Source: Octopus sinensis (Eukaryota). Taken from it: 38,312 nucleotides of DNA. How positions within the stretch are numbered: the first letter of the stretch is position 1; every line of letters begins with the position of its first letter. The position numbers were made by a program, and so were the translations under genes. Below the pieces are notes generated by a model. It saw only the letters and a list, made by a program, of their open reading frames with translations. It did no database searches and was not told where the DNA came from. Positions 286 through 36,479 of the stretch are shown one piece after another. The stretch is from NCBI RefSeq assembly GCF_006345805.1, contig NW_021835806.1, positions 1-38,312 on the forward strand, read 5' to 3'.

Positions 286-330
286 TTGAATGCATTGGCT
301 TGCATTGCATCATACAGTCAGTATCTACTT

Positions 331-425: not shown

Positions 426-812
426 CTAGTCTTGACGAAAGACAAGTGTTCAAACTAGGAATGCATTTCCTTGTAAGTGAACCAGATAATGAGTGGCACC
501 TGCTTGAATAACAACAACAATAACCAGTCAGTAAACGTAGTAAAATGTAAAACAAACAAAATCTTTTACTCACGTGATAAAGTATAACATATTATATATC
601 CCCGTTCAAAAAGAGAATATTCAATCTATTGTTTCTTCTAAATTATCCATTTTACCAACCATGTTAACTTGAGTGGATAATTTATGAAATGTCAATAATA
701 TCGATCCCTTTAATTTAATTAGTTTACAGTTAAAACGTGCAATTGGAATTTAGGAATAGAACATATTCTTAATAATTCCTACGAACAAAATAGCTCAGGT
801 AAACCTATTTAC

Positions 813-838
813 CTGCTTGTTCTGAGATTTGGGAAACA
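813..838 (-). CDS. Candidate 26-nt micro-exon, copy 1, (V)FPKSQNKQ, phase 1-0
   Basis: atttatttcag| acceptor, CAG|gtaaat donor. Confidence 0.45.
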
Positions 839-1124
839 CTGAAATAAATATTTCAAGGTTTTTCAAATTTATAATAAAATATTTTAAATCTAGATATTAA
901 TAATATATATTTTATTATTGTGGGACTTTCTGATCATCAATGGGCAGCCTGTGTATGGACAGCTGTGTATGCTACATAGTAGGGAAATGTATGTAGTGAA
1001 CACAGAGGACGTGTAAAGGCTTGAACAAAATGGAACCAGCATGCTCCACTGGATGGTGACTGTCAGTGTGCAGGTATAAAATGCTGACACGTTTTAAGAT
1101 AAAAGTCGAGAGTTATCACATGTA

Positions 1125-1290
1125 TGTAGTACGCAAGACAGACGACTGTGCTAGTATGACCATGTGATGTGTATGAATAAGATCAGCTGTATAAAGAGCA
1201 CCGATCTGTAAATGTGGAGAGAACCTCAAGAAAACTGGAAGGGAGTGTTGAGAAATGAGCTTCAGATCTTGAACCTGAGAGTCAATCGGT
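1125..1290 (+). mobile_element. Decayed RTE-clade LINE 3' fragment (copies near 8833-8995 and 20795-20955)
   Basis: Degenerate version of QERRLxWYGHVMRMDxDSCVKK...RKTW, compared with the RTE copy at 37693-37893. Confidence 0.6.
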
Positions 1291-1493
1291 AGAAAAGCGG
1301 GTATCTTTAAGAGACATATGTTCCTCGACCAATGGGGGTGGATAGTATCTCAGAATAGGACGTGTCTTGGGTAGAGACCGCCCATCAAATACATTTTAGA
1401 AAGAACATCAGACGATAAATGATGAGGATGTATTCGATTGTATTGTTATATGCAGCTAGTATTTATCTTGAAAGAGAAACAGACAATGGTTTC

Positions 1494-1567
1494 TCAGCAG
1501 AAAACCAAAGTCATTACTTCGATAAAGACAATGCTTAGTGGATGGAACGATAAATTTAATGTTGTAT
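1494..1567 (-). CDS. Candidate terminal exon, (D)TTLNLSFHPLSIVFIEVMTLVFC*, copy 1
   Basis: ttgtcttttcttag|AT acceptor, phase-1 entry. Confidence 0.4.
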
Positions 1568-2499
1568 CTAAGAAAAGACAACAGCAAAAATAAAAGTTTA
1601 AAACATTGTTAAAAGATATGAAGAGATAATATTTTTTAACTGCAACATCCGACATAATTCGTGATATAATAACTCAAATCTTCCTAATTTAACTAAAATA
1701 TTGCACACAGTTCCTACAACACCATTTCCAAAACGCTTCCGTCCCATTAATTGTCGATAAACACAGAAATAGCTACACCAGTCGTCTCGTTAGCTGAAAA
1801 CACTGATATACACCAGTTGAGCTTACTACTATAGAGAGAAATCCGTGATTATCTGGCAATGTTTAACTTGACCATTACAAAATTCGTTAACCCTAGAAGA
1901 AGTTCAGATGTACAATTACAAACTGCACGGTGGAGAGATATCATATTGTACCCTGACTGCTACCACAATCCGCCGTACACAACAAAACGCTGCATTTTAG
2001 CAGTTCCTTGTGTGATGATTAACAAAATGAAAGAATGGAATATCTGACGGGTTAGATCTGTATTTTTCACTGAGGCTATGACCAGCTACCTCTGGTTATA
2101 GATCTATTAAAGGGCTGAGTGGAAATTAAACTACACATGGTAAGATTTCTCTCTCCGACACATAATAGACATACAAAATTGAGATAAGCCCGCCCCAGCA
2201 CGAATTTTATCAGAGAATGAAGTAAATAACAATCGAATAAACAAAACAGAAACGACTTTTTACTATTTTAGATAAATCAATTAATTACTGCACACCAATT
2301 TCTAATTACTGGACAACTTCAAACAATCTGACACCGTGACAGCAGGTATCCTGAAACATTGTACACTTGCACAAAACCTTATTAACTACATTTAACTGGT
2401 CATCTACATACTATTGCATAAACATATCCGAAATGATACATAATAACTGACAATTAAGCATATATAAGCATGACGCAAATATAGATCAAACTGGAAGCA

Positions 2500-3600
2500 T
2501 TGAATCTTACGTTTGCCAAGAAGTTTCGAATACTCTCTTTCTTTTAACCCATTCCCATGTTTTCGTTTTCATCTTAATGTCCTTACAATGATTGGACAAA
2601 CAGGCAGCGCACCAGTGTCGAAACTTTTATAAGTTTTTCCCTAAACGTATGCATAGTTTCTCCTGCTACTTTGAACTTCACTTTGTTCTGCTGATCTTCC
2701 ACAAATAACAGATTGTATTATTTATTTGCTTCAAGTCAAATTCTTCACAAAGTAATCAGTCCACCCAGGCTATCCAGAAATATTTGCATAACATTTTGGT
2801 CTCTACATAGTATTTTTATGTCATCCATGAATGTCTTGTCTGGTGCTTTCACTTGGGTCATTTCTTTTGAGCAGACTACTGATCTAAGTAACATCTCGAA
2901 ACTGAAGGATTAATATTGTGCACCCTGCTCCAATTCCGATGACAGTCCCTGTAAAATGGTTTGTAATGAGCTGCCTTTTGAAATTGTTATAACAGCTCAT
3001 CATCAGACCTTAAAATTGCCCCAGTATGTAAAAGAAGTTCATTGATTTCATCAATAAATTGTATGGTCCACAACCATATGCTTTAGAGCGATCGAGCCAT
3101 ACAACATTCCAATTACTTCAATTCTTCTTTTTGTGTTGATCCCAGTTTGACATTTCATGTCCTACAAACCAAGAAAGTCAGGGATTTCCAGTCCTCTGCA
3201 CACTTTCCATCACATATCAATTATTTTGTAGGTGTATAGGTGATCTCTTAGCATGTACATCCACGTAAAGCTTGTCATTAAGGATTGAAACTAATTTCAA
3301 TTGGCCAATTGATTGTGATTCAGATTCCTTTCAAAAGTGAACTCTTTCTGCCTTATATCAGTCATAAATCCCTTCAATTTTATACCACAAACCCTTACTA
3401 TTATATAATGCTTATATAATGCAGTTTTTGCTCTTGCCTCCTTCTTGCTGCAATCTCTCAGTTAAAAGTTTAATTCCTGACTTTCTTTGAGAATTTATTA
3501 GAAAGACATCAACGTTTCTTTTGCTTGTACCACAATAAGATGCACCTAGGACACTTTATCAAGTGCTTTTAGGCAAGTATACCCTCATATAAAACCTAGA
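2500..3600 (-). mobile_element. Decayed Hero/R2-like non-LTR RT fragment
   Basis: Minus-strand frames give VVWLDRSKAYGCGPYNLLMKSMNFFYI and KTFMDDIKIL...KVKFKVAGETMHTFREK (FMDD-type RT) with many stops. Confidence 0.7.
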
Positions 3601-3678
3601 ATGGTTAATTGAGATGTGTCTTCTATCCGTTCATGACGTGGGAGCCTGGAAATCAGACGATATAGGATGAAGAGATTG

Positions 3679-3794
3679 TCAATTATTGTATAGTATCTTG
3701 CAACCAGTTTCTGTTTCGAAGTAAGAAATATAGACAACAACTATCACAGAAGTAAGTTGGATAAGGGCAATGTGTAGCGTATGTAATAAAATAT
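3679..3794 (-). CDS. Candidate terminal exon, (D)ILLHTLHIALIQLTSVIVVVYISYFETETGCKILYNN*
   Basis: ctgttttatttcacag|AT strong acceptor, phase-1 entry, hydrophobic stretch, TGA stop. Confidence 0.45.
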
Positions 3795-4288
3795 CTGTGA
3801 AATAAAACAGACTGCTTATACTTGAAATACCTTTCAAAGTACTTTTTTAGAAATATCAGCCAAAATAACAACATTAATCTATCAGCAAACATAATATAAA
3901 ATGTAAAACAAAGAGAAATGTCATTAACACGAATGTTTATCGCTAAACAACTACAAATATTAGTTTTCTCTTCCAAAGTAAAATATTAAATCTATTGTCT
4001 TCGAAGTTATCCCTTTTACAAACCATGCTCACCACATCGGATATTTTGTGAAATTACAATAATATCGATATGTTTTATTGGGTAAACTGGCAATATGACC
4101 ATTCCGAAATATAATAATATCTGTTTCAACACACGACTTCACATAAAAAATCTTGCACAACAAATATTTAATAGAATTATTATGCATCAAACTTTTCAAA
4201 TGCAAAATTTGGATTGGAAGATGTTGTCAGTCATTCAGTAAAGTTAAAATTTACAGTAATCGATAAGGTAATGATATTTTATACTCAT

Positions 4289-4351: not shown

Positions 4352-5195
4352 CGGAAAAATATATTTTCAATCAAGTTTTACATTTTACACTATAATATGA
4401 TTATATCTATCAATCAAAAATATTCCATTACCGTAAGATATCTTTATTTTTAATGGTCAACGGCTGACCACTATGCTTTTGGTCAGCACGCTTTACAGAT
4501 TCAATATAACAAAACTCTTTATTAAGAGCCACCAAAATATTAACTAATTTCGTTCTGAAGAAGAACTGACTTGGACAGTGACAACTCATCTAGTCCATAG
4601 GAGCCTGGAAATCTGACGATAAATGTCGGGGTTGTTGCCTGTGATTCACTTGCATCGTGCAACCTGTATCTTTCATGAAGTAAGAAGGCAGATACCGATT
4701 ATCACAGTAGCAAAGAAATGTTTTCTATTCGGGAAAAGACAATGTGTAGTGGATGTAATAATAAAATCTACCAGTGTAACAAAACAGAGAGTTTACACTT
4801 GGAACGCATTTCATTGCAATTCTTCTAGATTATGAGAAGCATCCGTTTAAATAGCAACAATAACAATAATAACCTTGAAGTAAACATGATAAAAAGTGTG
4901 ACAAAAACAGCTGTCATTAACTCTAAATTTATATTCCTAAACAAATTAGCTTAGTTCTCTCTTTCTCAAAACTATACAAAATATATTCCCGTTTCAATTT
5001 TCCATTTTACAAACCACTCTAACCTCGTTGGATATTTTGTGAACTTTCAGTAATATCGATATATTGAATAGAATTATTATACAACATTTCGAATCTAATT
5101 AGGATAGAATCTGTACTCAGTCGTTCTAAAATACAAAAGCTCGGGAGAAGGTGAAATGTATAGAAATCGGTAAATTAATATCATTTCATACTTAC

Positions 5196-5282
5196 AATCA
5201 TTCTCTGATTGGTCTACTCCAGAATACGATTTAAAACCGGAATCGGTACTGGCTCCCGATACCATACTTCCTGTTGAATGTT
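5196..5282 (-). CDS. Candidate 87-nt cassette exon A, (E)HSTGSMVSGASTDSGFKSYSGVDQSEND, phase 1-1
   Basis: tattcatttcag| acceptor, T|gtaagt donor, open frame. Confidence 0.7.
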
Positions 5283-5734
5283 CTGAAATGAATATTTTCA
5301 AGATTTGCGTTGTATAGGATGATGTGCTTATCTTTGTTAATAATCTATATTTCACAATTGTGACATATTTCTATTTTCAATTGTCAGCGACTGACCACTA
5401 TGCTTTTGGTCAGCACGTTTTACAGTTTCAATATAACAAAACTCTATATTAAGAGCAACCAAAATATTAACTAATTTCCTATCTATACTCTTTGTATTCA
5501 GATATCAAATATAATTCAACAATATTGTAATTATTTAATTTCATTGTCTCTTTATAACAGAATTTTGCTTTTAGTTTTCTCTTTCCTTCCGTATTTCTCT
5601 GATTCTCAGGGTGTTTAAGGCACATGTATAAAGAGAAGATAACTCAACTACTGAAAAACACTGCTATAAAGAGATAATTACGTGAAGTAATTGCAATATT
5701 GTTAAATTATGTTGGATGTCACAATACATTGCGT

Positions 5735-6170
5735 TGATATATGAAGGTTGGTCTCAAAACGAAGCCGGATTGGACCAATCGCATAAACCTCTTCAACTAC
5801 ACCTATTTACCTGCAATTTACAACAGGTGTGAAAGCTGGTACACGACGAAGTGGGAGGGTGTGAGTCTGATAATGGCCCAAAACACAATCGAAAAATCGA
5901 GGTTTGGGAGTGTTGCTAAATTTGCACATCAAGAGTGAGGCGATCAGAGAGAAATCCGGTGTGAGAGACATCATCACTAAAAACTTATGCCAAAATTTCA
6001 GATAGGACAGGTAGCCAGCTCCCTGAAAATATTTAGAGATGCACAGTTGTTGAGAGTTATATACACGAGCAGAGGAGGTCACTGAGAGCGAATCCAAAAG
6101 TGAGTATTTGACGAAATACGACATCCTACGTAGGTGAGAAGGTCAAGATGAAGACAGAAGTGGAGGGTGC
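5735..6170 (+). mobile_element. Decayed RTE-clade LINE C-terminal fragment (copies near 12590-13020, 15835-16260, 17705-18135)
   Basis: LFNYTYLPAIYNRCESWYTTK...AQNTIEKSRFG and IREKSGVRDIIT resemble the RTE post-RT region. Confidence 0.6.
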
Positions 6171-6896
6171 ACTGTGATCTCTGGTGTCGTCAATACACTC
6201 AGTCAGTCGATCATGGTCAAGGTGGTATTTCTGTCACATCTATGACATAGCGTTTTCACCTCTACCATAGTAAACCTCACGAACCAAACTTCTCGTTTTC
6301 TGCTCAACTCAAATGCCAAGCAAGTGGATAACCATATATCGATCTTCAAAAACTGGTTGCACCACTTATAGTTAGAAAAAAAGCACCAGCTCTCTCTGTG
6401 AAACATTGATTCTGGAAATTTTTGATTTTAACTGCCCACATCAACCTGCGTAGTTGTGACGCATCTATGACATGGCGTTTTCACATCTACAGTAGAACTC
6501 ACTAATCAAACAATCTTATAATTTTCTGCTCACTTCCAGTGTCAACAAAGTTAATCATCAAATATCTATCTTCAAATTCATTTCACTTTAGACTACAAAC
6601 ACCTACTCTCTCTGTGAAACATTGCTGCTGGTAATCTTTAATTTTAACTGCCCACATCTACGTTCACCAGAATGTCATCTCATGTAGAAAATATTTGAAG
6701 ACCCCTGAATGAAATAGATTTCATCCCAAGTGAGTAATGATTAATTCTACACAGGCGTAGAGGAAAGAAATATCAGATGTCCCCCAAAACTGTGAACACC
6801 TAATGTACTTCATACAAGGTCATGGTAAATTTACTATCAGTGAAATATGACAGAATCTTTATGGAAATCGATGAGGTAATATAATTTTAAACTCAC

Positions 6897-6947
6897 CATA
6901 TTGTTTTGAACTGAGTTGGGTCCTTTTGGCAAAATCTCTTCCATAAT
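6897..6947 (-). CDS. Candidate 51-nt cassette exon, (D)YGRDFAKRTQLSSKQY, phase 1-1
   Basis: tattcatttcag| acceptor, G|gtgagt donor, open frame; paralog of 18857-18907. Confidence 0.7.
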
Positions 6948-7444
6948 CTGAAATGAATATTTTCACGTATTACATTTTATTGTATGATTTGGTTATATTT
7001 CTTAATCTGTATTTTGGTATTCTTCGACATTTATATCTTAAATGGTCAACGGATGATCACTATATCTTTGGTGAGTAACTCATACTGTTTAACACAATAT
7101 TTAGAGCCTTCAAAATATGCGCAAATTTCCTATCTATCCCCTCTGTATTCAGATATCCAGCATAATTTAACAAGATTGAAATTATTTAATTACCTCTTTA
7201 GAACAGTATTCTTCCTCTATGCCTTTCCTTTCATATCTCTCTGTATTTGAGCGAGTTTAATGTACAGATATAAGAGAGGAAAACTAAACTAATGAGAAAC
7301 AGTGTTATAAAGAGATAATTACGTGAAGTAATTACAATATTGTTAAATTATGTCGGATGTCACATTACAGTGCGGTGATATATATATATCAGTAATCAAG
7401 CGATCAGAGAGAATTCTGAGCGACATCATCACCAAATGCAGATG

Positions 7445-7995
7445 GAAGAAGTGTTGTATTACTCTTGAATAGTGTCCTGATGTCATATGGGCCGCATATC
7501 TTTTGTATCTTTTCGGAGAGGCCTTTCACATAAGGTAGACAGACTGTGGACAGTTTATTGGTTTCATCCTCTCTTTTCTTCATAATTGGAGTGGATAGTA
7601 TGTTTTTGGGTAGTTGTTGCTTAATAGATTGTTACTTAGCGTGATCATTTCTTCGTTGTGGGTTTCACGATCGCTACTTATATTCTTTACTCGATGTTTT
7701 AGGCACTGAGCAATCCCTCTCTTTACACTGTAAGGATGGTGGGAAATGAAGTTGATGTATCGTCCGGTAAAGGTCGGCTTGCGGTATACGGATGTTCTGA
7801 ATCCATACTTGGTGCGTGTTATTAATACCTCCAGGTTCGAAATTTCCTCAAGACACCTGATGAAGGCTGGAGGGTATATCAGCCTAAACGTTGTGTTAAC
7901 AACAAACAAGATGAGTTCTCATCTTTTAAATATCGAACTAGGCTCTCTAAAATGCCTTGTATCCTTTCTTCCTTCAATACGTGTGTCATTTCTTT
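7445..7995 (-). mobile_element. Penelope-like element fragment: RT C-terminus plus an inverted LTR-like piece
   Basis: LEVLITRTKYGFRTSVYRKPTFTGRYINFISHHPYSVKRGIAQCLKHR and LPYVKGLSEKIQKIC are typical of the PLE RT thumb/linker. Confidence 0.85.
7853..7896 (+). ncRNA. Minimal type-I hammerhead-like motif with an altered core, copy 2
   Basis: ACAC-CTGATGA-AGGCTG-gagggtatat-CAGCC-TAAA-CGTT-GTGT; stem I is ACAC/GTGT. Confidence 0.6.
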
Positions 7996-8520
7996 GAATG
8001 CATTGGCTTGCTTTGCATCATACAGTCAGTATCTATATTTATGAATGGGAAAGTGGCGATGGTAGTCTGTGCAACAGACGAAAATCTTCCACTTGGATAA
8101 AGACAATGTTTAATGGATGTAATGATAGATTTACAAGTCTTGAAGAAAGACAAGTATTCAAACTCGGAATGCATTTCCTTGTACGTGAACAAGATAATGA
8201 GTGGCACCTGCTTGAATAACAACAACAATAACCAGTCAGTAAACGTAGTAAAATGTAAAGCAAGCAAAATATTTAACTCACCTGAAAAAGAATAACATAT
8301 TATATATCCCCGTTCAAAAAGAGAATATTCAATCTATTGTTTCTTCTAAATTATCCATTTTACCAACCATGTTAACTTGAGTGGATAATTTATGAAATGT
8401 CAGTAATATCGATCCCTTTAATATAATCAGTTTACAGCTAAAACATGCAATTGAAATTTATGAATAGAACACATTCTTAATAATTGTGACAAACAAAATA
8501 GCTCAGGTAAACCTATTTAC

Positions 8521-8546
8521 CTGCTTGCTCTGAGACTTGGGAAACT
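8521..8546 (-). CDS. Candidate 26-nt micro-exon, copy 2, (E)FPKSQSKQ, phase 1-0
   Basis: atttatttcag| acceptor, CAG|gtaaat donor; 3 differences from copies 1 and 3. Confidence 0.45.
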
Positions 8547-9201
8547 CTGAAATAAATATTTCAAGGTTTTTAAAATTTATTATAAAATATTTTAAATCTA
8601 GATATTAATAATATATATTTTATTATTGTGGGACTTTCTGATCACCAATGGGCAGCCTGTGTATGAACAGCTGTGTAAGCTACATAGTAGTGAAATGTAT
8701 GTAGTGAACACAGAAGACGTTTAAAGGCGTGAACAAAATGGAACCAGCACGCTCCACTGGATGGTGACTGTCAGCGTGCAGGTATAAAATGCTGACACGT
8801 TTTAAGATAAAAGTCGAGAGTTATCACATGTATGTAGTACGCAAGACAGACGACTGTGCTAGTATGGCCATGTGATATGTATGAATAAGATCAGCTGTAT
8901 AAAGAGCACCGATCTGTAAATGTGGAGAGAACCTCAAGAAAAATGGAAGGAAGTGTTGAGAAATGAGCTTCAGATCTTGAACCTGAGAGTCAATCGGTAG
9001 AAAAGCGGGTATCTTTAAGAGACATATGTCCCTCAACCAATGGGGGTGGATAGTATCTCAGAATAGGACGTGTCTTGTGTAGAGACCGCCCATCCAATGC
9101 ATTTTAGACAGAAAATCAGACGATAAATGATGAGGATGTATTCGATTGTATTGTTATATGCAGCTAGTATTTATCTTCAAAGAGAAAGAGACAATGGTTT
9201 C

Positions 9202-9275
9202 TCAGCAGAAAACCAAAGTCATTACTTCGATAAAGACAATGCTTAGTGGATGGAACGATAAATTTAATGTTGTAT
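9202..9275 (-). CDS. Candidate terminal exon, (D)TTLNLSFHPLSIVFIEVMTLVFC*, copy 2
   Basis: ttgtcttttcttag|AT acceptor, phase-1 entry into the family frame. Confidence 0.4.
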
Positions 9276-10249
9276 CTAAGAAAAGACAACAGCAAAAATA
9301 AAAGTTTAAAACATTGTTAAAAGATATGAAGAGATAATATTTTTTAACAGCAACATCCGACATAATTCGTGATATAACAACTCAAATCTTCCTAATTTAA
9401 CTAAAATATTGCACACAGTTCCTACAACACCATTTCCAAAACGCTTCCGTCCCATTAATTGTCGATAAACACAGAAATAGCTACACCAGTCGTCCCGCAA
9501 GCTGAAAACACTGATATACACCAGTGGAGCTTAGTACTATAGAGAGAAATCCGTGATTATCTGGCAATGTTTAATTTGACCATTACAAAAGTCGTTAACA
9601 CTAGAAGGAGTTCAGATGTACAATTACAAACTGCACGGTGGAGAGATATCATATTCTACCCTGACTGCTACCACAATCCGCCGTACACAACAAAACGAGA
9701 CATTTTAGCAGTTCCTTGTGTGATGATTAACAAAATGAAAGAATGGAATATCTGACGGGTTAGATCTGTATTTTTCACTGAGGCTATGACCAGCTACCTC
9801 TGGTTATAGATCTATTAAAGGGCTGAGTAGAAATTAAACTACTTGTGGTAAGAATTCTCTCTCCGACACAAAATAGACATACAAAATTGAGATAAGCCCG
9901 CCCCAGCACCAATTTTATCAGAGAATTATGTAAATAACTATCGAATAAACAAAACAGAAACGACTTTTTACTATTTTAGATAAATCAATTTCTGCACACC
10001 AATTTCTAATTGCTGGACTAACTTCAAACAATCTGACACCGCGACATCAAGTATCCTGAAACATTGTACACTTGCACAAAACCTTATTAACTACATTTTA
10101 CTGGTCATCTACATACTATTGCATAAACATATCCGAAATGATACATAATAACTGACAATCAAGCATATATAAGCATGACGCAAATATAGATCAAACTGGA
10201 AGCATTGAATCTTACGTTTGCCAGCAAGTTTCGAATATTCTCTTTCTTT

Positions 10250-11370
10250 TAACCCATTCCCATGTTTTCGTTTTCATCTTAATGCCCTTACAATTATTGG
10301 ACAAAGAGGCAGCGCAACACTGTCTGAAACTTTTATAAGTTTTTCCCTGAATGTATGCATGTATGCGGTGCCTCAGCATGGCCACAGCTCATGAGCTGAA
10401 ACTAGAATCAATCAATCAATCAATCATAGTTTCTCCAGCTACTTTGAACTTCACTTTGTTCTGCTGATCTTCCACAAATAACAGATTGTATTATTTATTT
10501 GCTTCAAGTCAAATTCTTGACAAAGTAATCAGTCCACCCAGGCTATCCAGAAATATTTGCATAACATTTTGGTCTCTACATAGTATTTTTATGTCATCCA
10601 TGAATGTCTTGTCTTGTTCTTTCACTTGGGTCATTTCTTCTGAGCAGACTACTGATCTAGGTAACATCTCGAAACTGAAGGATTAATATTGTGCACCCTG
10701 CTCCAATTCCGATGACAGTCCCTGTAAAATGGTTTGTAATGAGCTGCCTTTTGAAATTGTTATACCAGCTCATCATCAGACCTTCACACTGCCCCAGTAT
10801 GTCAAAGAAGTTCATTGATTTCATCAATAAATTGTATGGTACCCAACCATATGCTTTAGAGCGATCAAGGCATACAACATTCCAATTACTTCAATTCTTC
10901 TTTGTGTGTTGATCCCAGTTTGACATCTCATGTCCTTCAAACCAAGAAAGTCAGCGGATTCCAGTCATCTGCACACTTTCCATCACATATCAATTATTTT
11001 GTAGTTGTATAGATGATCTCTTAGCATGTACATCCACGTAAAGCATGTCATTAAGGATTGAAACTAATTTCAATTGGCCAAATAATTGTGATTCAGATTC
11101 CTTTCATAAGTGAACTCTTTCTGCCTTATATCAGTCATAAATCCCTTCAATTTTATACTACAAACCCTTACTATTATATAATGCTTATATAATGCAGTTT
11201 TTGCTCTTGCCTCCTTCTTGCTGCAATCTCTCAGTTAAAAGTTTAATTCCTGACTTTCTTAGAGGTTTTATTAGAAAGACATCAACGTTTCTTTTGCTTG
11301 TACCACAATAAAATGCACCTAGGACACTTTATCAAATGGTTTGTTTTAGGAAATTATACCCTCATATAAA
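10250..11370 (-). mobile_element. Decayed Hero/R2-like RT fragment, recent duplicate
   Basis: Colinear with 2500-3600. Confidence 0.7.
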
Positions 11371-11455
11371 ACCTAGAATGGATAACTGAGATTCGTCTGC
11401 TATCCGATCAAGAGGTGGGAGCATGGAAATCAGACGTTAAAGGATGAAGAGATAG

Positions 11456-11571
11456 TCAATTATTGTATAGTATCTTGCAACCAGTATCTGTTTTGAAGTA
11501 AGAAATATAGACAACAACTATCACAGAAGTAAGTTGGATAAGGGCAATGTTTCGCGTATGTAATGAAATAT
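11456..11571 (-). CDS. Candidate terminal exon, (D)ISLHTRNIALIQLTSVIVVVYISYFKTDTGCKILYNN*
   Basis: atttatttcacag|AT acceptor, phase-1 entry, 18-residue hydrophobic stretch, TGA stop. Confidence 0.45.
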
Positions 11572-12066
11572 CTGTGAAATAAATCAGACTGCTTATACTT
11601 GAAATACATTTCAAAGTACTTTTTTAGAAATATCAGCCAAAATAACAATATTAATCTATCAGCAAACATAATATAAAATGTAAAACAAAGAGAAATGTCA
11701 TTAACACGAATGTTTATCGCTAAACAACTACAAATATTAGTTTTCTCTTCCAAAGTGAAATATAAAATCTATTGTCTTCCAAGTTATCCATTTTACAAAC
11801 CATGCTCACCACATCGGATATTTTGTGAAATTACAATAATATCGATATGTTTTATTGGCTAAACTGGCAAAATGACCATTCCGAAATATAATAATATCTG
11901 TTTCAACACACGACTTCACATAAAAAAATCTTGCACAACAAATATTTAATAGAATTATTATGCATCAAACTTTTCAAATGCAAAATGTGGATTGGAAGAT
12001 GTTGTCAGTCATTCAGTAAAGTTAAAATTTACAGTAATCGATAAGGTAATGATATTTTATACTCAT

Positions 12067-12129
12067 GATCAAATGATTCTGTTTCAAGCATAGGAAAGTT
12101 TGGAGACAGTATTGTTTGCGACTATGTGT
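12067..12129 (-). pseudogene. Dead 63-nt cassette exon, copy 2
   Basis: Acceptor reads ttttccg, donor reads atgagt, in-frame TAG; same module position as intact cassettes. Confidence 0.55.
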
Positions 12130-13559
12130 CGGAAAAATATATTTTCAAGTTTTACATTTTACACTATAATGTGATTATATCTATTAATCAAAAATATTCC
12201 ATTACCGTAAGATATCTTTATGTTCAATTGTCAACGGCTGACCACTATGCTTTTGGTCAGCACGCTTTACAGATTCATTACAACAAAACTCTATATTAAG
12301 ATCCACCAAAATATTAACTAATTTCCTATCTTTACTCTCTGTATTCAGACATCAAATATAATTTAACAATATTGTAATTATTTAATTTCATTGTCTCTTT
12401 ATAACAATATTTTGCTTTTAGTTTTCTCTTCCTTCCGTATTTCTCTGATTTTCAGGGAGTTTAAGGCACAGGTATAAAGAGAGGATAACTCAACTACTGA
12501 AAAACAGTGCTATAAAGAGATAATTACGTGAAGTATTTGCAATATTTTTCAATTATGTTGGATGTCACAGTACATTGCATAGATATGTGAAAGTTGGTCT
12601 CAAAACGAAGCTGGATTCGACCAATCGCATAAATCTCTTCAACGACACCTATTTACCTGCAATTTACAACAGGTGTGAAAGCTGGTACACAATGAAGAGG
12701 GAGGAAGTGAGTCTGATAATGGCCCAAAGCACATTCGAAAAATCGAGGTTATGGAATGTTGCTAAATTTGCACATCAGGAGTGAGGCGATCATAGAGAAA
12801 TCAGGTGTGAGAGACATCATCACTAAAAACTTATGCCAAAATTTCAGATGGGACAGGTAGCCAGCTCACTGAAATTATTTAGGGATGCACAGTTGTTGAG
12901 AGTTATATACGCGAGCAGAGGAGGTCACTGAGAGCGAATCCAAAAGTGAGTGTTTGATGAAATACGACATGCTACGTAGGTGAGAAGGTCAAGATGAAGA
13001 CAGAAGTGGAGGATGCACTGTGTTCTCTGGTGTCGTCAATACACTCAGTCAGTCGACCATGGTCAAGGTGGTATTTCTGTCACATCTATGACATAGCGTT
13101 TTCACATCTACAGTAGAACTCACTAATCAAACATTCTTATAATTTTCTGCTCACTTCCAATGTCAACAAGGTTAATCATCAAATATCGATCTTCAAATAC
13201 ATTTCACACCACTTCATTTTAGACAACTAGCACCTACTCTCTGCGTGAAACATTGCTGCTGGTAATCTTTAAGTTTAACCGCTCTCACCAACGTTCGCCA
13301 GAATGTCTTCTGATACAGAAGATGTGTGAAACCTCCTTACGGAAACAGTTTTCTTTCCAGATGAGTAATAATTTATTCTACTAAGTTGTTGGCGAAATTG
13401 GTATCAGGTACCCCAAAACAACACCGCCGTTTATCTACACATCATTGCATAAAATGCATCCGAAATGGTACATAATAGAACTGATTCTCAAAAATACATA
13501 CGCAAGCCATGCTAGAAACATCATATACTATATTTACTTTGAGGTTTTCACAATCTATT

Positions 13560-14620
13560 GCTTATAAACCATTATCGATTTTTACCATGATCTCAATATC
13601 TCTATTCTTACTAGACAATAGGGAAGCCTACCAGCATACGAAATACTTACAAATTTGTCATTAAAATATGTCATGGTTTCTCTTGATACGTTGTATATCA
13701 CTTGTTTCTGCTGCCCTTTGACAATTAAAAAACCGTATTATTTATTTGCATTAAGTCTTAATCTCGACCAAGGATTAAATCCATTCCGGTTGTCCAAAAC
13801 TATTAGCATATTCTTTTGATCTCTTTCCCTTATTTGTATGTCATCGATGATGTTTCTCTTCCAGCTATCTGCTGAGCAGTCTGCTGATCTGAGTAACATC
13901 TCATTAACAAAGACTGACATTTTGCATCCTACTCTAGTTTCACGCCAATCCTACTCTCTGTATAATATGTGTGTAACGAATAGCATTTGGAAATTGTTAA
14001 ACCAACTCTTCGTCATATTTTTAAAATCCTCCAGTATGTAAACGAAGGCCATTGCTTTTCTCGATGGCTTATGTTGTTCACATCCCTAAGCATTGGACTG
14101 ATCCAACGATACAACATTCAAATCACTTCTATTTTTCTATGTATGTTGGTCCCACTTTTACAAGGCATGTCCCAAACACTCAGGATGTCAACGGATTCTT
14201 TTGCAGTCACACTTTCAGTCTCATTAGAGTTATTTTGTCGATGTGTAGTTGATCTCTGACCATGGAAATCTTAGCAATCAGAATTGCAATCGGTGCCAAC
14301 TTGCGAATTAGTTTCGCTTTAGCTTAAATTGTACGCAAAATCTTTCTCTCTTCCTCCAGCCATCAATCACACCAACTTTATACCCGAAAGTTCCACCATT
14401 ATGTGATGCCTACAACAAAACCTTGTACAAGACTTGAAACTTTCTAATGTACAGCCTCACCTTGCCTTATACCCAAAGATAACTACTTCTTTCTTGCTGC
14501 AATCCTCAAGCTCAAATTCTTCGTTCCTGATTTTGTTGGACATTTTCTTAGAGAGACGATAATATTTCACATGCTTTGCAACAATAAAATGCACCTAGAA
14601 CCCTTTACAAGGTGGTTGGT
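13560..14620 (-). mobile_element. Decayed Hero/R2-like RT fragment, older paralog
   Basis: Recognisable but much more diverged homolog of 2500-3600, in the same module position. Confidence 0.55.
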
Positions 14621-14850
14621 GTCAGGAATGGCATAGCACTACATGAAAGCAGTGATGTTTAAGTGAGATATGTTCCTCTACGAATGAAGAAGGGAAGTAG
14701 TTCTGAAGAAGAACTGACTTGGACAGCGACAACTCATCTAGTCCATAGGAGCCTGGAAATCTGACGAGAAATGTCGGGGTTGTTGCCTGTGATTCACTTG
14801 CATCGTGCAACCTGTATCTTTCATGAAGTAAGAAAGGCAGATACCGATTA

Positions 14851-14918
14851 TCACAGTAGCAAAGAAATGTTTTCTATTCGGGAAAAGACAATGTGTAGTG
14901 GATGTAATAATGAAATTA
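14851..14918 (-). CDS. Candidate stop-containing terminal exon, xISLLHPLHIVFSRIENISLLL*
   Basis: gttacactggtag|TA acceptor entering, in phase 1, the frame shared by the terminal-exon family. The copy near 4767 is 2 nt shorter and frameshifted. Confidence 0.35.
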
Positions 14919-15351
14919 CTACCAGTGTAACATAACAGAGAGTTTACACTTGGAACGCATTTCATTGTAATTCTTCTAGATTATGAGAAGCATCCGTTTA
15001 AATAACAACAACAAACAATAATAACCTGAAGTAAACATGGTAAAAAATGTGACAAAAACAGCTGTCATTAACTCTAAATTTATATTCCTAAAAACAAATT
15101 AGCTTAGTTCTATCTTTCTCAAAACTATACAAAATATATTCCCGTTTCAATTTTCCATGTTAAAACCACTCTAACTTCGTTGGATATTTTGTGAAATTTC
15201 AATAATATCGATATATTGAATAGAATTATTATACAACAAACCTTTCGAATCTAATTAGGGATAGAATCTGTACTCAGTCGTTCTAACATACAAAGCTCGA
15301 GATAAATTGAAATGTATAGAAATCGGTAACTTAATATTATTTCATACTTAC

Positions 15352-15438
15352 ATCCTTCCTCTGATTCATCTACTCCAGAAGATGATTGTAAACCGGAATC
15401 GGTACTGGCTCCGGGTACTATACTTGCTGTTGAATGTT
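15352..15438 (-). CDS. Candidate 87-nt cassette exon B, (E)HSTASIVPGASTDSGLQSSSGVDESEEG, phase 1-1
   Basis: tattcatttcag| acceptor, T|gtaagt donor, open frame. Confidence 0.7.
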
Positions 15439-17161
15439 CTGAAATGAATATTTTCAAGATTTGCGTTGTATAGCATGATGTGCTTATCTTTGTTAATAAT
15501 CTATATTTCACTATTGTGACTTATTTCTATTGTCAATGGCTATATAAAGGGCCACCAAAATATTAACTAATTTCCTCTCTTTACTCTCTGTATTCAGATA
15601 TCAAATATAATTTAACAATATTGTAATTATTTAATTTCATTGTCTCTTTATAACAATATTTTGCTTTTAGTTTTCTCTTTCCTTCCGTATTTCTCTGATT
15701 TTCAGGGAGTTTAAGGCACAGGTATAAAAAGAGGATAACTCAACTACTGAAAAACATTGCTATAAATAGATAATTACGTGAAGTAATTGCAATATTGTTA
15801 ATTATGTTGGATGTCACAATACATTGCATTGATATATGAAAGTTGGTCTCAAAAAAGTCGGATTGAACCAATCACATAAACCTCTTCAACAACACCTATT
15901 TACCGCAATTTACAACAGGTGTGAAAGCTGGTACACAACGAAGATGGAGGATGTGAGTCTGATAATGGCCCAAAGCACAATCGAAAAATCGAGGTTTGGG
16001 AGTGTTGCTAAATTTGCACATCAAGAGTGAGGCGATCAGAGGGAAATCAGGTGTGAGAGACTCATCACAAAACTTATGACAAAATTTCAGATGGGACAGG
16101 TAACCAGCTCACTGAAAATATTTAGAGATGCACAGTTGTTGAGAGTTATATACACGAGCAGAGGAGGTCACTGAGAGCGAATCCAAAAGTGAGTGTTTGA
16201 CGAAATACGACATGCGACATAGGTGAGAAGGTCAAGATGAAGACAGAAGTGGAGGGTGCACTGTAAACTCTGGTGACTTCAATACACTCAGTCAGTCGAT
16301 CATGGTCAAGGTGGTATTTTGTCACATTTATGACATAACGTTTTCACCTCTACCGTAGTAAACCTCACAAACCAAACTTCTCGTTTTCTGCTCAACTCCA
16401 ATGTCAAGCAAGTGGATACCATATATCTATCTACAAAAACTGGTCACACCACTTACCGTTAGACAGAAAGTACCTGCTCTCTGTGAAATATTGCTTCTGG
16501 TAATCTTTGATTTTAACTGCCCACATCAACGTGCGTATTTGTGACGCATCTATGACATGGCGTTTTCACATCTACAGTAGAACTCACTAATCAAACAATC
16601 TTATAATTTTCTGCTCACTTCCAGTGTCAACAAGGTTAATCATCAAATATCTATCTTCAAATTCCTTTCACTTTAGATACAAACACCTACTCGCCGTGTG
16701 AAACATTGCTGCTGGTAATCTTTAATTTTAACTGCCCACATCTACGTTCACCAGAATGTCATCTCATGTAGAAAATATTTGAAGACACCTTAATGACATA
16801 GATTTCATCCTAAGTGAGTAATGATTAATTCTACACAGGTGTAGAGGAAAGAAATATCAGATGTCACATCAGATGTCATTAACTCTAAATTTATATTCCT
16901 AAACAAATTAGCTTAGTTCTCTTTCTTAAAACTATACTAAATATATTCCCGTTTCAATTTTTCATTTTACAAACCACGCTATCCTCGTTGTATATTTTGT
17001 GAAATTTCTGTAATATCGATATATTGAATAGAATTATTATACAACAAAACTTTCGAATCTAATTAAGGAATAGAATCTGTACTCAGTCGTTCTAACATAC
17101 AAAAGCTCGGGAGAAGGTGAAATGTATAGAAATCGGTAACTTGAAATTATTTCATACTTAC

Positions 17162-17248
17162 TATCTTCCTCTGATTCATCTTCTCCAGAAGGTAAACTTA
17201 AACGGTGACTGATACTGGCTCTTTGAAATATACTTCGTGTCAGAATAT
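17162..17248 (-). CDS. Candidate 87-nt cassette exon C, (D)ILTRSIFQRASISHRLSLPSGEDESEED, phase 1-1
   Basis: gtcatttcag| acceptor, A|gtaagt donor, open frame. Confidence 0.7.
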
Positions 17249-18856
17249 CTGAAATGACTATTTTCAAGAGTTGCGTTGTATAGCATGATGTGCTTATCTT
17301 TGTTAATAATCTATATTTCACTATTGTGACATATTCCTATTGTCAATGGTCAACGGCTGACCACTATGCTTTTGGTCAGCACGTTTTACAGTTTCAATAT
17401 AACAAAACTCTATATTAAGAGCCACCAAAATATTAACTAATTTCCTATCTATACTCTCTGTATTCAGACATCAAATATAATTCAACAATATTGTAATTAT
17501 TTAATTTCATTGTCTCTTTATAAGAATATTTTGCTTTTAGTTTTCTCTTTCCTTCCGTATTTCTCTGATTTTCAGGGAGTTTAAGGCACAGGTATAAAGA
17601 GAGGATAACTCAACTACTGAAAAACATTGCTATAAAGAGATAATTACGTGAAGTAATTGCAATATTGTTAAATTATGTTGGATGTCACAATACATTGCGT
17701 TGATATATGAAAGTTGGTCTCAAAACGAAGTCGGATTGGACCAACCACATAAACCTCTTCAACAACACCTATTTACCGGCAATTTACAACAGGTTTGAAA
17801 GCTGTACACAACGAAGATGGAGGATGTGAGTCTGATAATGGCCCAAAGCACATTCGAAAAATCGAGGTTTGGGAGTGTTGCTAAATTTGCACATCAAGAG
17901 TGAGGCGATCAGAGGGAAATCAGGTGTGAGAGACATCATCACTAAAAACTTATGACAAAATTTCAGATGGGACAGGTAACCAGCTCACTGAAAATATTAA
18001 GAGATGCTCAGTTGTTGAGAGTTATATACGCGAGCAGAGGAGGTCACTGAGAGCGAATCCAAAAGTGAGTGTTTGACGAAATACGACATGCTACGTAGGT
18101 GAGAAGGTCAAGATGAAGACAGAAGTGGAGGGTGCACTGTGATCTCTGGTGTCGTCAATACACTCAGTCAGTCGATCATGGTCAAGGTGGTATTTCTGTC
18201 ACATCTATGACATAGCGTTTTCACCTCTACCGTAGTAAACGTCACGAACCAAACTTCTCGTTTTCTGCTCAACTCCAATGTCAAGCAAGTGGATAACCAT
18301 ATATCTATCTACAAAAACTGGTCACACCACTTACCGTTAGACAGAAAGTACCTGCTCTCTGTGAAATATTGCTTCTGGTAATCTTTGATTTTAACTGCCC
18401 ACATCAACCTGCGTATTTGTGACGCATCTATGACATGGCGTTTTCACATCTACAGTAGAACTCACTAATCAAACAATCTTATAATTTTCTGCTCACTTCC
18501 AGTGTCAACAAGGTTAATCATCAAATATCTGTCTTCAAATTCCTTTCACTTTAGATACAAACACCTACTCGCTGTGTGAACATTGCTGCTGGTAATCTTT
18601 AATTCTAACTGCCCACATCTACGTTCACCAGAATGTCATCTCATGTAGAAAAATTTTGAAGACCCCTGAATGACATAGATTTCATCCCAAGTGAGGAATA
18701 ATTAATTCTACACAGGTCTAGGAGAAAGAAATATCAGATGTCCCCCAAACTGTTACCACCTAATTTACTTCATATAAGCTCATGGTAAATTTACTATCAG
18801 TGAAATATGACAGAATCTTTATGGAAATCGATGAGGTAATATAATTAAAAACTCAC

Positions 18857-18907
18857 CATAATGACTTAAACTGTGTTCGGTCCTTTTGGGGAAATCTCTT
18901 CCATAAT
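18857..18907 (-). CDS. Candidate 51-nt cassette exon, (D)YGRDFPKRTEHSLSHY, phase 1-1
   Basis: tattcatttcag| acceptor, G|gtgagt donor, open frame. Confidence 0.7.
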
Positions 18908-19404
18908 CTGAAATGAATATTTTCACGTATTACATTTTATTGTATGATTTGGTTATATTTCTTAATCTATATTTTGATATTCTTCGACATTTATATCTTA
19001 AATGGTCAACGGATGACCACTATATCTTTGGTGAGCAACTCATACTGTTTAACACATTAATTAGAGCCTTCAAAATATGCGCAGATTTCCTATCTATCCT
19101 CTCTGTATTCAGATATCCAGCATGTTTTAACAAGATTGAAATTATTTAATTACCTCTTTATAACAGTATTCTTCCTCTATGCCTTTCCTTTCGTATCTCT
19201 CTGCATTTGAGTGAGTTTAAGGTACAGATATAAGAGAGGAAAACTAAACTAATGAGAAACAGTGTTATAAAGAGATAATTACGTGAAGTAATTGCAATAT
19301 TGTTTAATTATGTCGGATGTCACATTACAGTGCGGTGATATATATCCGTAATCAAGCGATCAGAGAGAATTCTGGTGTGAGCGACATCATCACCAAATGC
19401 GGAA

Positions 19405-19955
19405 GGAAGAAGTGTGGTTTTACTCTTGAATAGTGTCCCGATGTCATATGGGCCGCATATCTTTTGTATCTTTTCGGAGAGGCCTTTCACATAAGGTAGA
19501 CAGACTGTGGACAGTTTATTGGTTTCATCCTCTCTTTTCTTCATAATTGGAGTGGATAGTATGTTTTTGGGTAGTTGTTGCTTAATAGATTGTTACTTAG
19601 CGTGATCATTTCTTCGTTGTGGGTTTCACGATCGCTACTTATATTCTTTACTCGATGTTTTAGGCACTGAGCAATCCCTCTCTTTACACTGTAAGGATGG
19701 TGGGAAATGAAGTTGATGTATCGTCCGGTAAAGGTCGGCTTGCGGTATACGGATGTTCTGAATCCATACTTGGTGCGTGTTATTAATACCTCCAGGTTCG
19801 AAATTTCCTCAAGACACCTGATGAAGGCTGGAGGGTATATCAGCCTAAACGTTGTGTTAACAACAAACAAGATGAGTTCTCGTCTCTTAAATATTGAACT
19901 AGGCTATCTAAAATGTTCAGTATCCTGTCTTCCTTCAATACGTGTGTCATTTCTT
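19405..19955 (-). mobile_element. Penelope-like element fragment, copy 3
   Basis: ORFs 19320-19544 and 19541-19870 carry the same PLE motifs. Confidence 0.85.
19814..19857 (+). ncRNA. Minimal type-I hammerhead-like motif with an altered core, copy 3
   Basis: Same sequence as copy 2. Confidence 0.6.
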
Positions 19956-20479
19956 TGAATGCATTGGCTTGCATTGCATCATACAGTCAGTATCTATATT
20001 TATGAATGGGAAAGTGGCATGGTAGTCTGTGCAACAGACGAAAATCTTCCACTTGGACAAAGACAATCTTTAATGGATGTAGTGATAGATTTCCTCGTCG
20101 TGAAGAAAGAAAAGTGTTCAAACTTGGAATGCATTTCCTTGTAAGTGAACCAGATAATGAGAGGCACCTGCTTGATATACAACAACAAAACCAGTCAGTA
20201 AACGTAGTAAAATGTAAAACAAACAAAATCTTTTACTCACGTGATAAAGTATAACATATTATATATCCCCGTTCAAAAAGAGAATATTCAATCTATTGTG
20301 TCTTCTAAATTATCCATTTTACCAAACATGTTAACTTGAGTGGGTAAATTATGAAATGTCAGTAATATCGATCCCTTTAATTTAATTAGTTTACAGTTAA
20401 AACGTGCAATTGGAATTTAGGAATAGAACATATTCTTAATAATTCCTACGAACAAAATAGCTCAGGTAAACCTATTTAC

Positions 20480-27144: not shown

Positions 27145-27195
27145 CAGGTGGTTCTGCCAACATCTGGACTTCCGGTTTTGACGACTTTGGACCCT
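27145..27195 (-). CDS. 51-nt phase-1/phase-1 exon after the RING, (E)GPKSSKPEVQMLAEPP
   Basis: ttgtttatttcag| acceptor, G|gtgagt donor, no stop codon, continues the phase-1 end of the RING exon. Confidence 0.8.
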
Positions 27196-28534: not shown

Positions 28535-28677
28535 CCAAACTATTTTTGCTCGTTATATTCTGTCTACACATAGGGCATCGTTTAGGTATCTTTGGGGGAC
28601 AGCATTTCTTACACAGCGAAAGATGTTTACATGGAAAGAACGTCTCTGTGGCCACTTCGTCTTCACAAAACACACAT
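28535..28677 (-). CDS. RING-HC (C3HC4) exon of the ANK+RING gene
   Basis: tcctcag|A TGT acceptor, TTG G|gtaaga donor, 143 nt, phase 2-1. Translates CVFCEDEVATETFFPCKHLSLCKKCCPPKIPKRCPMCRQNITSKNSL = C-x2-C-x11-C-x-H-x3-C-x2-C-x8-C-x2-C. Confidence 0.92.
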
Positions 28678-31507: not shown

Positions 31508-31686
31508 TGCGTTGGTGGGAATAACATATTTAACGTCTTTTTTAAATTTTCCTTTTCTATTAGGTCCAATGGTGTTCTACCACTTTTGTTTTTACAGTAA
31601 AAGTTGGCCCCGTGGTGGGCTAGGTAGCTGGCAACTACCACACCAGAGCACCTTTCTTCATTTCCCAGTTTCAGCTCTACGCAGAA
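31508..31686 (-). CDS. Last-ankyrin/linker exon of the ANK+RING gene (not in the ORF track)
   Basis: tttgtag|TTC acceptor, CA|gtaagt donor, 179 nt, phase 0-2. Translates FCVELKLGNEERCSGVVVASYLAHHGANFYCKNKSGRTPLDLIEKENLKKTLNMLFPPT(Q). Phases match both neighbouring exons. Confidence 0.9.
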
Positions 31687-35184: not shown

Positions 35185-35397
35185 CTGATCTAACATGGTC
35201 ATGTGCTCCACCTCAGAATGAAAGTTGTTTTCTCTTTTTAACGCCAGATGCAGGCAATTATTTCCTCCATGTTCAACAACATTTACATTCGTGCCCCTGG
35301 CTATCAGCCGCTGCATTATTCCGAGGTGACCGTCCGAGACAGCTTCAAGCAATGGTGTCCTATATTTTTTGTTCACAATTTCTAAATTCACCGAATC
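35185..35397 (-). CDS. Ankyrin-repeat exon of a MIB-like ANK+RING E3 ligase (upstream exons lie outside the window or were not found)
   Basis: cacaaag|GAT acceptor, CAG|gtaagt donor, 213 nt, phase 0-0. Translates DSVNLEIVNKKYRTPLLEAVSDGHLGIMQRLIARGTNVNVVEHGGNNCLHLALKRENNFHSEVEHMTMLDQ, with TPLxxA/GH and GNxxLHLA ankyrin motifs. Confidence 0.9.
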
Positions 35398-36479
35398 CTT
35401 TGTGGAGGTAAAAATGGAAAATGAAAATTTACATGAAAATCAGGGTTGATATCAATGTCATTACAGTTTTCTACTGGGTACTAGATCAAACTGATCAAAT
35501 ACATTTGATGTTTGTCAGTGAAATAAATCTTCCATAAGGACCTCTATAACCTGATACATGTGTGTGTTAGAGACATGATAAACATATTAAGATGTCCTAC
35601 TTTGCCCCTCACTATAGTAAGTTGTAGGGCAACAGAACTAGAGTAAACACATGATTAGCAGATCAAGTCAAGTAAAGAAGAATTATAATTTCTAATGTTT
35701 ACTTTTGACGTTGCTACATTAATAAGGGGTTCATAAAACTGCTGAGCCGGTTAGCGTCCACATGCATAAAACTAATGCGCACGCACGCACACACACATAA
35801 ACATCAGTGTTACATATATAAATACATATAATGAATTGGGGAAACGGAGTTCATGAGAATATGCATCACAACGATCGTTTCGACCCATCTTGCATCGGTC
35901 GCTTGCGGGTGGGCTACTATACAACGTGTTGTGTTGCATCCCCCAGTGCAGATGCATCTCATCGGGTACCTTGTTTTAATGTAAAGATACCTCACTAAAT
36001 ATATTCAGTTTCACTTGACATGTTGTTGCTAGGAGCTTCTTGGATTACAACATGAGAGACAACAGCCTTCTGGCAACAACAACATTCCAAGCGAACCCGA
36101 ATATATTTACAGAGGTATCTTCTTTAAAAGAAGACACCCGATGACATGCATCTGCACCGGAGGATGTACCACAACCAGTTATACAATATCCTACCTGCAA
36201 GGGACCGATACAAGATGGATTGAAACAATCGTTGCGATGAATAAAAATTCTCATTAACTCCATTTTCTGCTTCCCTCATTCATTATAAACTGAACGAACA
36301 CTGCAGAATACATGAGGTAGATCCAGTGTCACTTATAGCTCAACTGTGGATGACATGAGGTAACCGAATCAGCGAAAGATCTTAAGCGGGATACTTCTAA
36401 ATGTATACCCACATTCCAAATAATTACAAATACATAACACGCACACACACTCACACACACACACCACACACACATACAG

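Follow-up and report, generated by a model that had tools for sequence, protein, structure and literature searches.

Does an octopus ubiquitin ligase carry, on duplicated exons, a phosphodegron that could be switched on and off by exon choice? The question is raised by the unplaced Octopus sinensis scaffold VCDQ01005844.1 in GCA_006345805.1, whose entire 38,312 bp were analyzed and are referred to here as the window. The sole annotated gene of the window lies on the minus strand and encodes XP_036355957.1 (P0002), a 287-residue protein named 'E3 ubiquitin-protein ligase MIB2-like, partial'. The 3' part of the gene contains three homologous 87-nucleotide (nt) segments, A, B and C, two of which (A and B) encode a DSGxxS motif. 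An earlier note on this DNA suggested that the motif could be a beta-TrCP degron controlled by the choice among the three exons. The exons, their reading frame, the match to the consensus and the probable loss of the motif in C are borne out, but the working beta-TrCP degron switched by exon choice is not, as no positive evidence and several weak contrary indications were obtained. Most likely, the motif matches the consensus without having been selected for, in a tail that evolves fast, and the hyperdivergence that is confined to the exons is more notable than the degron motif.

The DSGxxS motif in the 87-nt exons

Segments A, B and C are each flanked by an acceptor that ends in TTCATTTCAG and a donor that begins with GTAAGTATGAAAT. 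A single frame is open across all three segments and consists of 2 nt, 28 codons and 1 nt, with intron phase 1 on both sides. In this common open frame, the exon peptides are HSTGSMVSGASTDSGFKSYSGVDQSEND for A, HSTASIVPGASTDSGLQSSSGVDESEEG for B and ILTRSIFQRASISHRLSLPSGEDESEED for C. The P0002 protein was placed back on the window one exon at a time, and all positions below are window coordinates. The exons and the motif sites are located as follows.

5196..5282, minus strand: exon A, 87 nt, phase 1/1, (E)HSTGSMVSGASTDSGFKSYSGVDQSEND, with a CAG acceptor and a GTAAGT donor; included in XP_036355957.1
5227..5244, minus strand: DSGFKS motif of exon A
15352..15438, minus strand: exon B, 87 nt, with a canonical CAG acceptor; the NCBI model begins at 15447, 9 nt earlier
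15383..15400, minus strand: DSGLQS motif of exon B
17162..17248, minus strand: exon C, which measures 87 nt if the CAG acceptor is used; the NCBI model takes an upstream TAG acceptor, which gives 96 nt from 17257
17193..17210, minus strand: SHRLSL of exon C, at the same position as DSGxxS of A and B

The coordinates, frame and peptides that were previously reported for DSGxxS in two exons and for its replacement in the third are all correct. The exons belong to a RING-ligase gene and are translated in the proposed frame in the NCBI model XP_036355957.1. The final Ser residue of the motif is encoded by TCG in A and TCA in B, which confirms the synonymous change. Both motifs have the form DSG-hydrophobic-x-S (DSGF/LxS) and fit the published degron consensus of beta-TrCP, DSGxxS (PMC13097077, PMC2287288, PMC6027159). 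In a six-frame translation of the window (76,624 positions), the A and B copies are the only DSGxxS matches. All three exons close with an acidic tract of the pattern SG(V/E)D(Q/E)SE (SGVDQSE, SGVDESE and SGEDESE), as the earlier note had described. Exons A, B and C and the whole tail fall on the disordered side of the charge-hydropathy plot, a sequence measure; the tail contains 26% Ser and Thr residues and carries a net charge of -10. No Pfam family is found in the tail of P0002.

The chance occurrence of the motif was estimated by shuffling the residues of each exon. DSGxxS appears in 2-3% of the shuffles per exon, and a looser ELM-type pattern, DSG.{2,3}[ST], appears in 4-6%. Because A and B arose by duplication (19 of their 28 residues are identical) and the motif was inherited, the two motifs count as a single evolutionary event. 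All four fixed residues of the motif would fall among the 19 conserved positions of the 28 with a probability of 0.19. Given this retention probability and the 2-3% shuffle frequency, the motif itself is real, but its presence and retention are only weakly unusual.

Relatives were found only among Octopus proteins, besides one weak metagenome (ENA) match. The family combines ankyrin repeats, a single C3HC4 RING and a mini-exon linker, with a C-terminal Death domain in most members and a hydrophobic tail in some. Conservation of the motif is not seen in these relatives. DSGxxS occurs in none of the 31 other family proteins recovered, an A/B/C-like exon is absent from the four paralogous loci that extend past the RING exon (L002, L003 and L006 of O. 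sinensis and L004 of O. vulgaris), and the motif appears to be lost within the array itself, in C. An exhaustive HMMER search of 1.84 billion representative proteins, with the 136-residue tail as query, brought up no relative; the search covered cluster representatives and has low power for 29-residue exons below about 70-80% identity. The sole match of the tail, P0033, is a low-complexity Ala/Gly/Asp-rich protein and was rejected as spurious.

Exon bodies diverge faster than their introns

Exons A, B and C reside in tandem copies of a unit of about 1.8 kb. The units in turn form part of larger, higher-order repeats of 7.7 and 12 kb (1-4095 with 7709-11872; 4958-8529 with 16918-20488), which also duplicate two further tail exons, E and F. 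The repeat units and the extra exon copies are listed below.

4950..6800, minus strand: 1.8-kb repeat unit with exon A
15100-16880, minus strand: sister unit with exon B
16910-18760, minus strand: sister unit with exon C
11740-13430, minus strand: sister unit with dead copy D
12067..12129, minus strand: D, dead exon-unit copy, with the acceptor CAG changed to CCG, the donor GT changed to AT and the matching open reading frame (ORF) absent
~4356-4294, minus strand: D', sister copy of D
18857..18907, minus strand: E2, YGRDFPKRTEHSLSHY, an intact paralogue of exon E whose splice sites are good; unused by the NCBI model
8546-8521: F2, copy of exon F
20505-20480: F3, copy of exon F

The introns of the three units are 94-99% identical, whereas the exons differ by 16-38%. 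The pairwise comparisons, including the ratio of nonsynonymous to synonymous divergence (pN/pS), are as follows.

A-B: 14/87 exon differences; flank divergence 5.9%; Fisher p=8e-4; pN/pS 0.95
A-C: 33/87 exon differences; flank divergence 5.4%; Fisher p=5e-18; pN/pS 1.47
B-C: 28/87 exon differences; flank divergence 4.4%; Fisher p=1.5e-15; pN/pS 2.08

The divergence excess begins at the acceptor and ends at the donor, which provides a clean local example of exon bodies that diverge four- to seven-fold faster than near-identical introns. The same excess is observed between E and E2 (8/51 nt; flank divergence 5.2%; p=0.006). As a control, the dead copies D and D' differ at 2/63 nt, which equals the flank level without an excess. 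The exons contain no indels, compared with 2-6 expected from the flank indel-to-substitution ratio (P of zero = 0.11, 0.07 and 0.003), and their ORF is still open (P about 0.23-0.46). It follows that A, B and C are real coding exons, or were until recently, and that their frame and length are protected but their sequence is not. Because the exon pN/pS is about 1-2, purifying selection on the motif is not visible.

The site patterns of the units are discordant. The upstream flanks pair B with C, whereas the first 60 nt of the exon pair A with B. Exon C carries 21 private changes in these 60 nt (35%), whereas its upstream flank has 1.4%. The state of A and B, with DSGxxS, is thus probably ancestral, and loss in C is the more parsimonious direction, in agreement with the earlier description of the motif as erased there. 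The hyperdivergence of the exons could be generated by diversifying selection or by a short conversion patch from an unseen divergent paralogue.

The intron flanks can be aligned among all tail mini-exons and also with those of the linker exon and of the first Death-domain exon of the paralogues (window exons 27145-27195, 6897-6947, 5196-5282 and 813-838; L002:23140-23590; L004:35260-35710). The common features are an acceptor context, TTGAAA(A)TATTyATTTCAG, a donor context, GTrAGTATrAAAT, and, some 110 nt before the acceptor, a palindrome with the sequence CTGACCA-N9-TGGTCAG. In unit B, a 60-nt deletion takes out the palindrome. The mini-exon bodies, with lengths of 26, 51, 51, 72 and 87 nt, are not alignable. 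Since the flanks align and the bodies do not, the tail arose as a single exon-plus-intron module was duplicated again and again. In a MAFFT alignment, part of the tail was placed against Death-domain exon 1, but a derivation of exon C from that exon was rejected, as the flanks are homologous and the bodies are not convincingly alignable.

The explanation that is favored, with moderate confidence, is a rapidly diverging, duplicated and disordered tail in which DSGxxS is probably incidental. The alternatives considered below overlap with this explanation, and the probabilities assigned to them do not add up to one. In the favored scheme, tandem duplication of the ~1.8-kb exon-plus-intron unit in the 3' part of the O. 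sinensis gene generated the phase-1/phase-1 mini-exons A, B and C, which would encode a Ser/Gly/Asp/Glu-rich, probably disordered spacer after the RING. Reading frame and length would be maintained, and the sequence would be free, or driven, to change. The ancestral exon was probably A/B-like, with a DSG-hydrophobic-x-S motif that was inherited by A and B and that C would have lost through a localized burst of change in its first 60 nt. The product of the annotated transcript would contain two DSGxxS copies and three acidic CK2-like tracts.

Alternatively, the segments may be real exons under diversifying selection that serve as variable cassettes of an immune-type ankyrin-RING-Death family, in which the variable 5' two-thirds would form a recognition or interaction surface and DSGxxS would again be incidental. 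The restriction of hyperdivergence to exons with retained frame and length, the same behavior of E and E2, the tail mini-exons with alignable intron flanks and unalignable bodies, and the discrete variant blocks that occur in family members in all combinations are consistent with such cassettes. However, pN/pS is not significantly greater than 1, the raised synonymous divergence is better explained by conversion or an older ancestry than by positive selection alone, and the sample consists of three copies on one scaffold. The cassette explanation is therefore rated as rather unlikely.

Exon use and the gene model

In XP_036355957.1, the exons are arranged in the order ankyrin, second ankyrin-region, RING, linker 4, C, B, E, A and F. 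The exons other than A, B and C are positioned as follows.

35185..35400, minus strand: ankyrin-repeat exon; the model covers 35316-35185, with its start Met at 35316, and the open frame and paralogue match run from ~35400
31508..31686, minus strand: second ankyrin-region exon, FCVELKLGNEERCSG...LFPPT, from protein-to-window mapping
28535..28677, minus strand: RING exon, C3HC4, zf-C3HC4_3, from Pfam and protein-to-window mapping
27145..27195, minus strand: linker exon 4, 51 nt, EGPKSSKPEVQMLAEPP, a peptide that recurs in paralogues P0008, P0009 and P0015
6897..6947, minus strand: exon E, with 51 nt and phase 1/1, (Y)YGRDFAKRTQLSSKQY, placed by the model after B and before A
813..838, minus strand: exon F, 26 nt, phase 1 to 0, (L)FPKSQNKQ, the final exon of the partial model, with a donor directed off the scaffold

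All introns from the RING exon donor to the exon F acceptor are in phase 1, and exon F ends in phase 0. Read-through of the RING-exon donor (28521-28535) yields ...SKNSLGKNTV and a stop, which would correspond to a short isoform that terminates just past the RING, as is the case for RINGs of the IAP type. Such an ending at the RING is annotated for P0001, an isoform of a paralogue. No Death-domain exon that could end the gene ahead of the 87-nt exons was found within the window, and an Rfam scan of the window gave no match.

XP_036355957.1 is the only model of the locus; it does not treat the exons as alternatives but joins C, B, E and A one after another. Because C, B and A are all included, the product would carry both DSGxxS copies at once, and the choice between A/B and C that the earlier note had envisaged finds no support. 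The symmetric exons (87 nt, phase 1/1) could each be skipped or included without a change of frame. A direct junction from B to A would join T to AA and create a TAA stop codon, which is prevented by exon E in the model. Isoforms of the paralogues skip other linker mini-exons (P0004 versus P0005 and P0009 versus P0015). For this gene itself, the data examined do not record any isoform. A Dscam-like pairing of docking and selector sequences was not found in the window; the search revealed an inverted repeat internal to the unit, together with its copies, but a unique docking site was absent. Inverted repeats are present upstream of every unit. Those ahead of exons A, B and C measure 33-49 nt, are located at a distance of 230-440 nt and also show complementarity to sequence that precedes E and E2 (17467-17499 / 17654-17686, 5688-5720, 15784-15815, 7303-7351 and 19263-19311). 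They could be an element resembling a miniature inverted-repeat transposable element (MITE) or RNA pairing sites.

Exon inclusion is central to the alternative raised by the earlier note, in which the DSGF/LxS of A and B would serve as a functional SCF(beta-TrCP/Slimb) phosphodegron or as a beta-TrCP decoy. In this case, inclusion of A/B versus C would set the degron number and hence ligase turnover or SCF crosstalk. A working phosphodegron in exons A and B is possible but quite improbable. Both motifs show an exact match to the consensus, down to the hydrophobic residue in fourth place, and are surrounded by a Ser-rich and acidic context that scores as disordered and provides CK2-like sites; the exons are skippable without a frameshift, and skipping of linker mini-exons has precedent in the paralogue isoforms. 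These points are countered by the lone gene model with all three exons, the absence of the motif from the other family proteins (0/31) and of the exon type from the paralogous loci (0/4), the pN/pS of about 1-2, the loss of the motif from one copy of three, and a chance of 2-3% per exon for what is one event rather than two.

Several observations nevertheless weigh against the favored explanation. The motif block is the best-conserved part of A and B, and a 23-nt block that spans the motif, GGAGCCAGTACCGATTCCGGTTT, is the longest identical A-B stretch. Both variable positions differ between A and B while D, S, G and S are kept, as expected of a real degron. The strict form with a hydrophobic fourth residue appears in just 0.4-0.7% of the shuffles. 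An ankyrin protein with DSGLxS resembles I-kappa-B and p105. The conservation check rests on paralogues rather than on a true orthologue or alleles, and real conservation may exist unseen. Moreover, the synonymous divergence in the exons (0.17-0.27) is likewise above the intron level; conversion from unseen paralogues is thus possible, which would weaken the inferred direction of loss.

A combination of cassette and degron can also be envisaged. A conserved intron frame (acceptor and donor contexts and the upstream palindrome) would be repeatedly duplicated, the mini-exon would be driven to diversify at constant frame and length, and the A/B cassette would carry a working I-kappa-B-like phosphodegron that tunes ligase stability or SCF(beta-TrCP) crosstalk in Death-domain signaling. 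This combination is considered highly improbable.

The quality of the gene model bears on a further alternative. In the NCBI model, exon B begins behind a non-AG acceptor (..AAAATAT/TC; 15439-15449), which precedes the canonical CAG by 9 nt. For exon C, two acceptors, TAG and CAG, are available at a distance of 9 nt (17249-17259), and either of them keeps the frame. The non-AG acceptor and the unused E2, F2 and F3 copies suggest that the model is transcript-guided rather than ab initio. In the paralogue model P0029, an F-type terminal exon is read in a different frame (L003:16528-16601) owing to a 1-nt indel, which renders the annotation of terminal mini-exons unreliable.

Two other O. sinensis scaffolds, L005 (VCDQ01007966.1) and L006 (VCDQ01005868.1), are ~95.5% identical to the 5' half of the gene (window 26687-38312), which comprises the ankyrin and RING exons. 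Beyond this region, L006 has another linker exon, followed by Death-domain exons, and L005 stops before the tail. These scaffolds are haplotigs or very recent segmental duplicates. Their comparison with the window indicates that the gene has a young 5' half in common with paralogues and its own 3' half, the mini-exon array.

On this basis, the 87-nt segments may be pseudo-exons in a repeat array on a truncated, recently duplicated gene copy with a poor partial model, such that the motif would never be made as protein. This alternative carries appreciable weight as a minority view. The model is partial and lacks the Death domain of the paralogues, for which the window contains no exon. A non-AG acceptor is required for B, equally good copies (E2, F2 and F3) are passed over, the F-type exon is in another frame in P0029, and units D and D' are already dead. 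The failure to find a tail homologue among the 1.84 billion representative proteins, the difference of the 3' half from the scaffolds that share the 5' half and a pN/pS that is not under 1 are also in line with pseudo-exons. However, the divergence excess ends sharply at intact splice sites and is missing in the dead copies. The exons have equal length and frame and contain no indels or stops, despite a divergence of 16-38%, and the acidic C-terminal tract is kept at the protein level in A, B and C. In addition, six tiny exons over 27 kb with a non-consensus junction would be more typical of transcript-guided than of ab initio modeling.

The gene family and known systems

The Pfam domains of P0002 are Ank_4 and zf-C3HC4_3 only. 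The nearest solved RINGs by sequence are those of cIAP2, cIAP1 and XIAP, and the match to MIB1 is marginal and occurs via the ankyrin repeats. The name 'MIB2-like' is thus one of convenience, and the protein is better labeled as a member of an octopus-expanded ANK-RING-(linker)-Death family. MIB/HERC2, ZZ and REP domains are absent from the precomputed Pfam lists of 32 family proteins and of P0002, although many of the models are partial and the 5' end of the gene lies off the scaffold. MIB1 and MIB2 resemble the octopus family in that ankyrin repeats are followed by a C-terminal zf-C3HC4_3 RING. Unlike MIB1 and MIB2, the octopus family has a single RING that is nearest to the IAP type, its paralogues add a Death domain or a hydrophobic tail, and the three MIB-type domains do not appear in the Pfam lists examined.

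The paralogues P0001-P0031 contain discrete variant blocks, namely FCVELKLGNEERC or YLKDLKLGKKERY, KRCPMCRQ or KQCLKCGQ, and EGPK or VGPN. The corresponding sites in the window are located at 31640-31686 and 28560-28600. The many block combinations among the paralogues suggest recombination or gene conversion between copies. The second ankyrin-region exon (ANK2) is 9.6% divergent from L005, compared with 3.6% in the flanks.

The combination of an ankyrin-repeat protein and a DSG-hydrophobic-x-S motif is shared with I-kappa-B alpha, beta and epsilon and with NF-kappa-B1 p105, for which the degron consensus and the I-kappa-B architecture have been described (PMC6027159). The C-terminal Death domain of p105 is also found in paralogues of the octopus gene. 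The DSGLQS of exon B presumably differs from the I-kappa-B alpha motif at one variable position. In contrast to I-kappa-B and p105, the octopus motif resides in duplicated C-terminal mini-exons rather than in a conserved N-terminal regulatory region, the RING lies between the ankyrin repeats and the motif, and the motif is not conserved in relatives. A Rel-homology partner context is not known for the octopus gene, and the resemblance is a lead rather than a test. If the motif works, an invertebrate E3 ligase would be handed to another E3, SCF-beta-TrCP, via a degron on duplicable mini-exons, which would be reminiscent of how I-kappa-B and p105 are regulated, in an ankyrin-RING-Death family that is lineage-specific and may have a role in the innate signaling of the octopus. 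A six-residue motif is, however, weak evidence in a Ser/Gly/Asp-rich, fast-evolving tail. The octopus motif matches the DSGxxS/T pattern of canonical beta-TrCP substrates such as beta-catenin, Bora and Emi1 (PMC2287288, PMC13097077), and its own context is Ser-rich and scores as disordered. The motifs of those substrates are conserved across species and validated by phosphorylation, binding and half-life assays, whereas the octopus motif is lost in one of three copies.

The array is similar to tandem cassette or mutually exclusive exon arrays, such as those of the Dscam type, in its tandem exon copies with splice sites, symmetric phase and equal length, and in the stop codon that would arise at a direct B-to-A junction. 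In Dscam-type arrays, the exons are conserved and the introns have diverged; the octopus array is the reverse, its annotated transcript includes all copies, and exclusive choice is not seen. Conserved introns and hypervariable exons are known from conotoxin genes and snake-venom phospholipase A2 (PLA2) genes as 'accelerated evolution'. The octopus exon bodies likewise diverge far faster than the neighboring introns after duplication. Unlike in the toxin genes, the variable part of the octopus protein is an intracellular, probably disordered tail rather than a secreted toxin, pN/pS is not clearly above 1, and three copies were sampled.

The scaffold DNA is AT-rich and eukaryotic, with microsatellites and transposon debris. 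The debris is distributed over 29804-30435 (minus strand), 1-210, 7407-7918 and 19323-19903 (minus strand), 36401-36727 (plus strand) and 25362-26658 (minus strand). It includes a Tc1/mariner-like transposase remnant with weak Pfam HTH matches under the gathering cut-off, reverse-transcriptase-like ORF fragments that are repeated in the higher-order units and were recognized by eye without a Pfam match, and a decayed multi-frame ORF without an assigned family. Long (AT)n, (CA)n and (GT)n microsatellites are located at 27650-27720, 28840-28900, 29230-29320, 30850-31060 and 35060-35160. A (CA)n run lies ~30 nt past the donor of the ankyrin exon and is translated in some paralogue models, where it forms the tails of P0016 and P0018.

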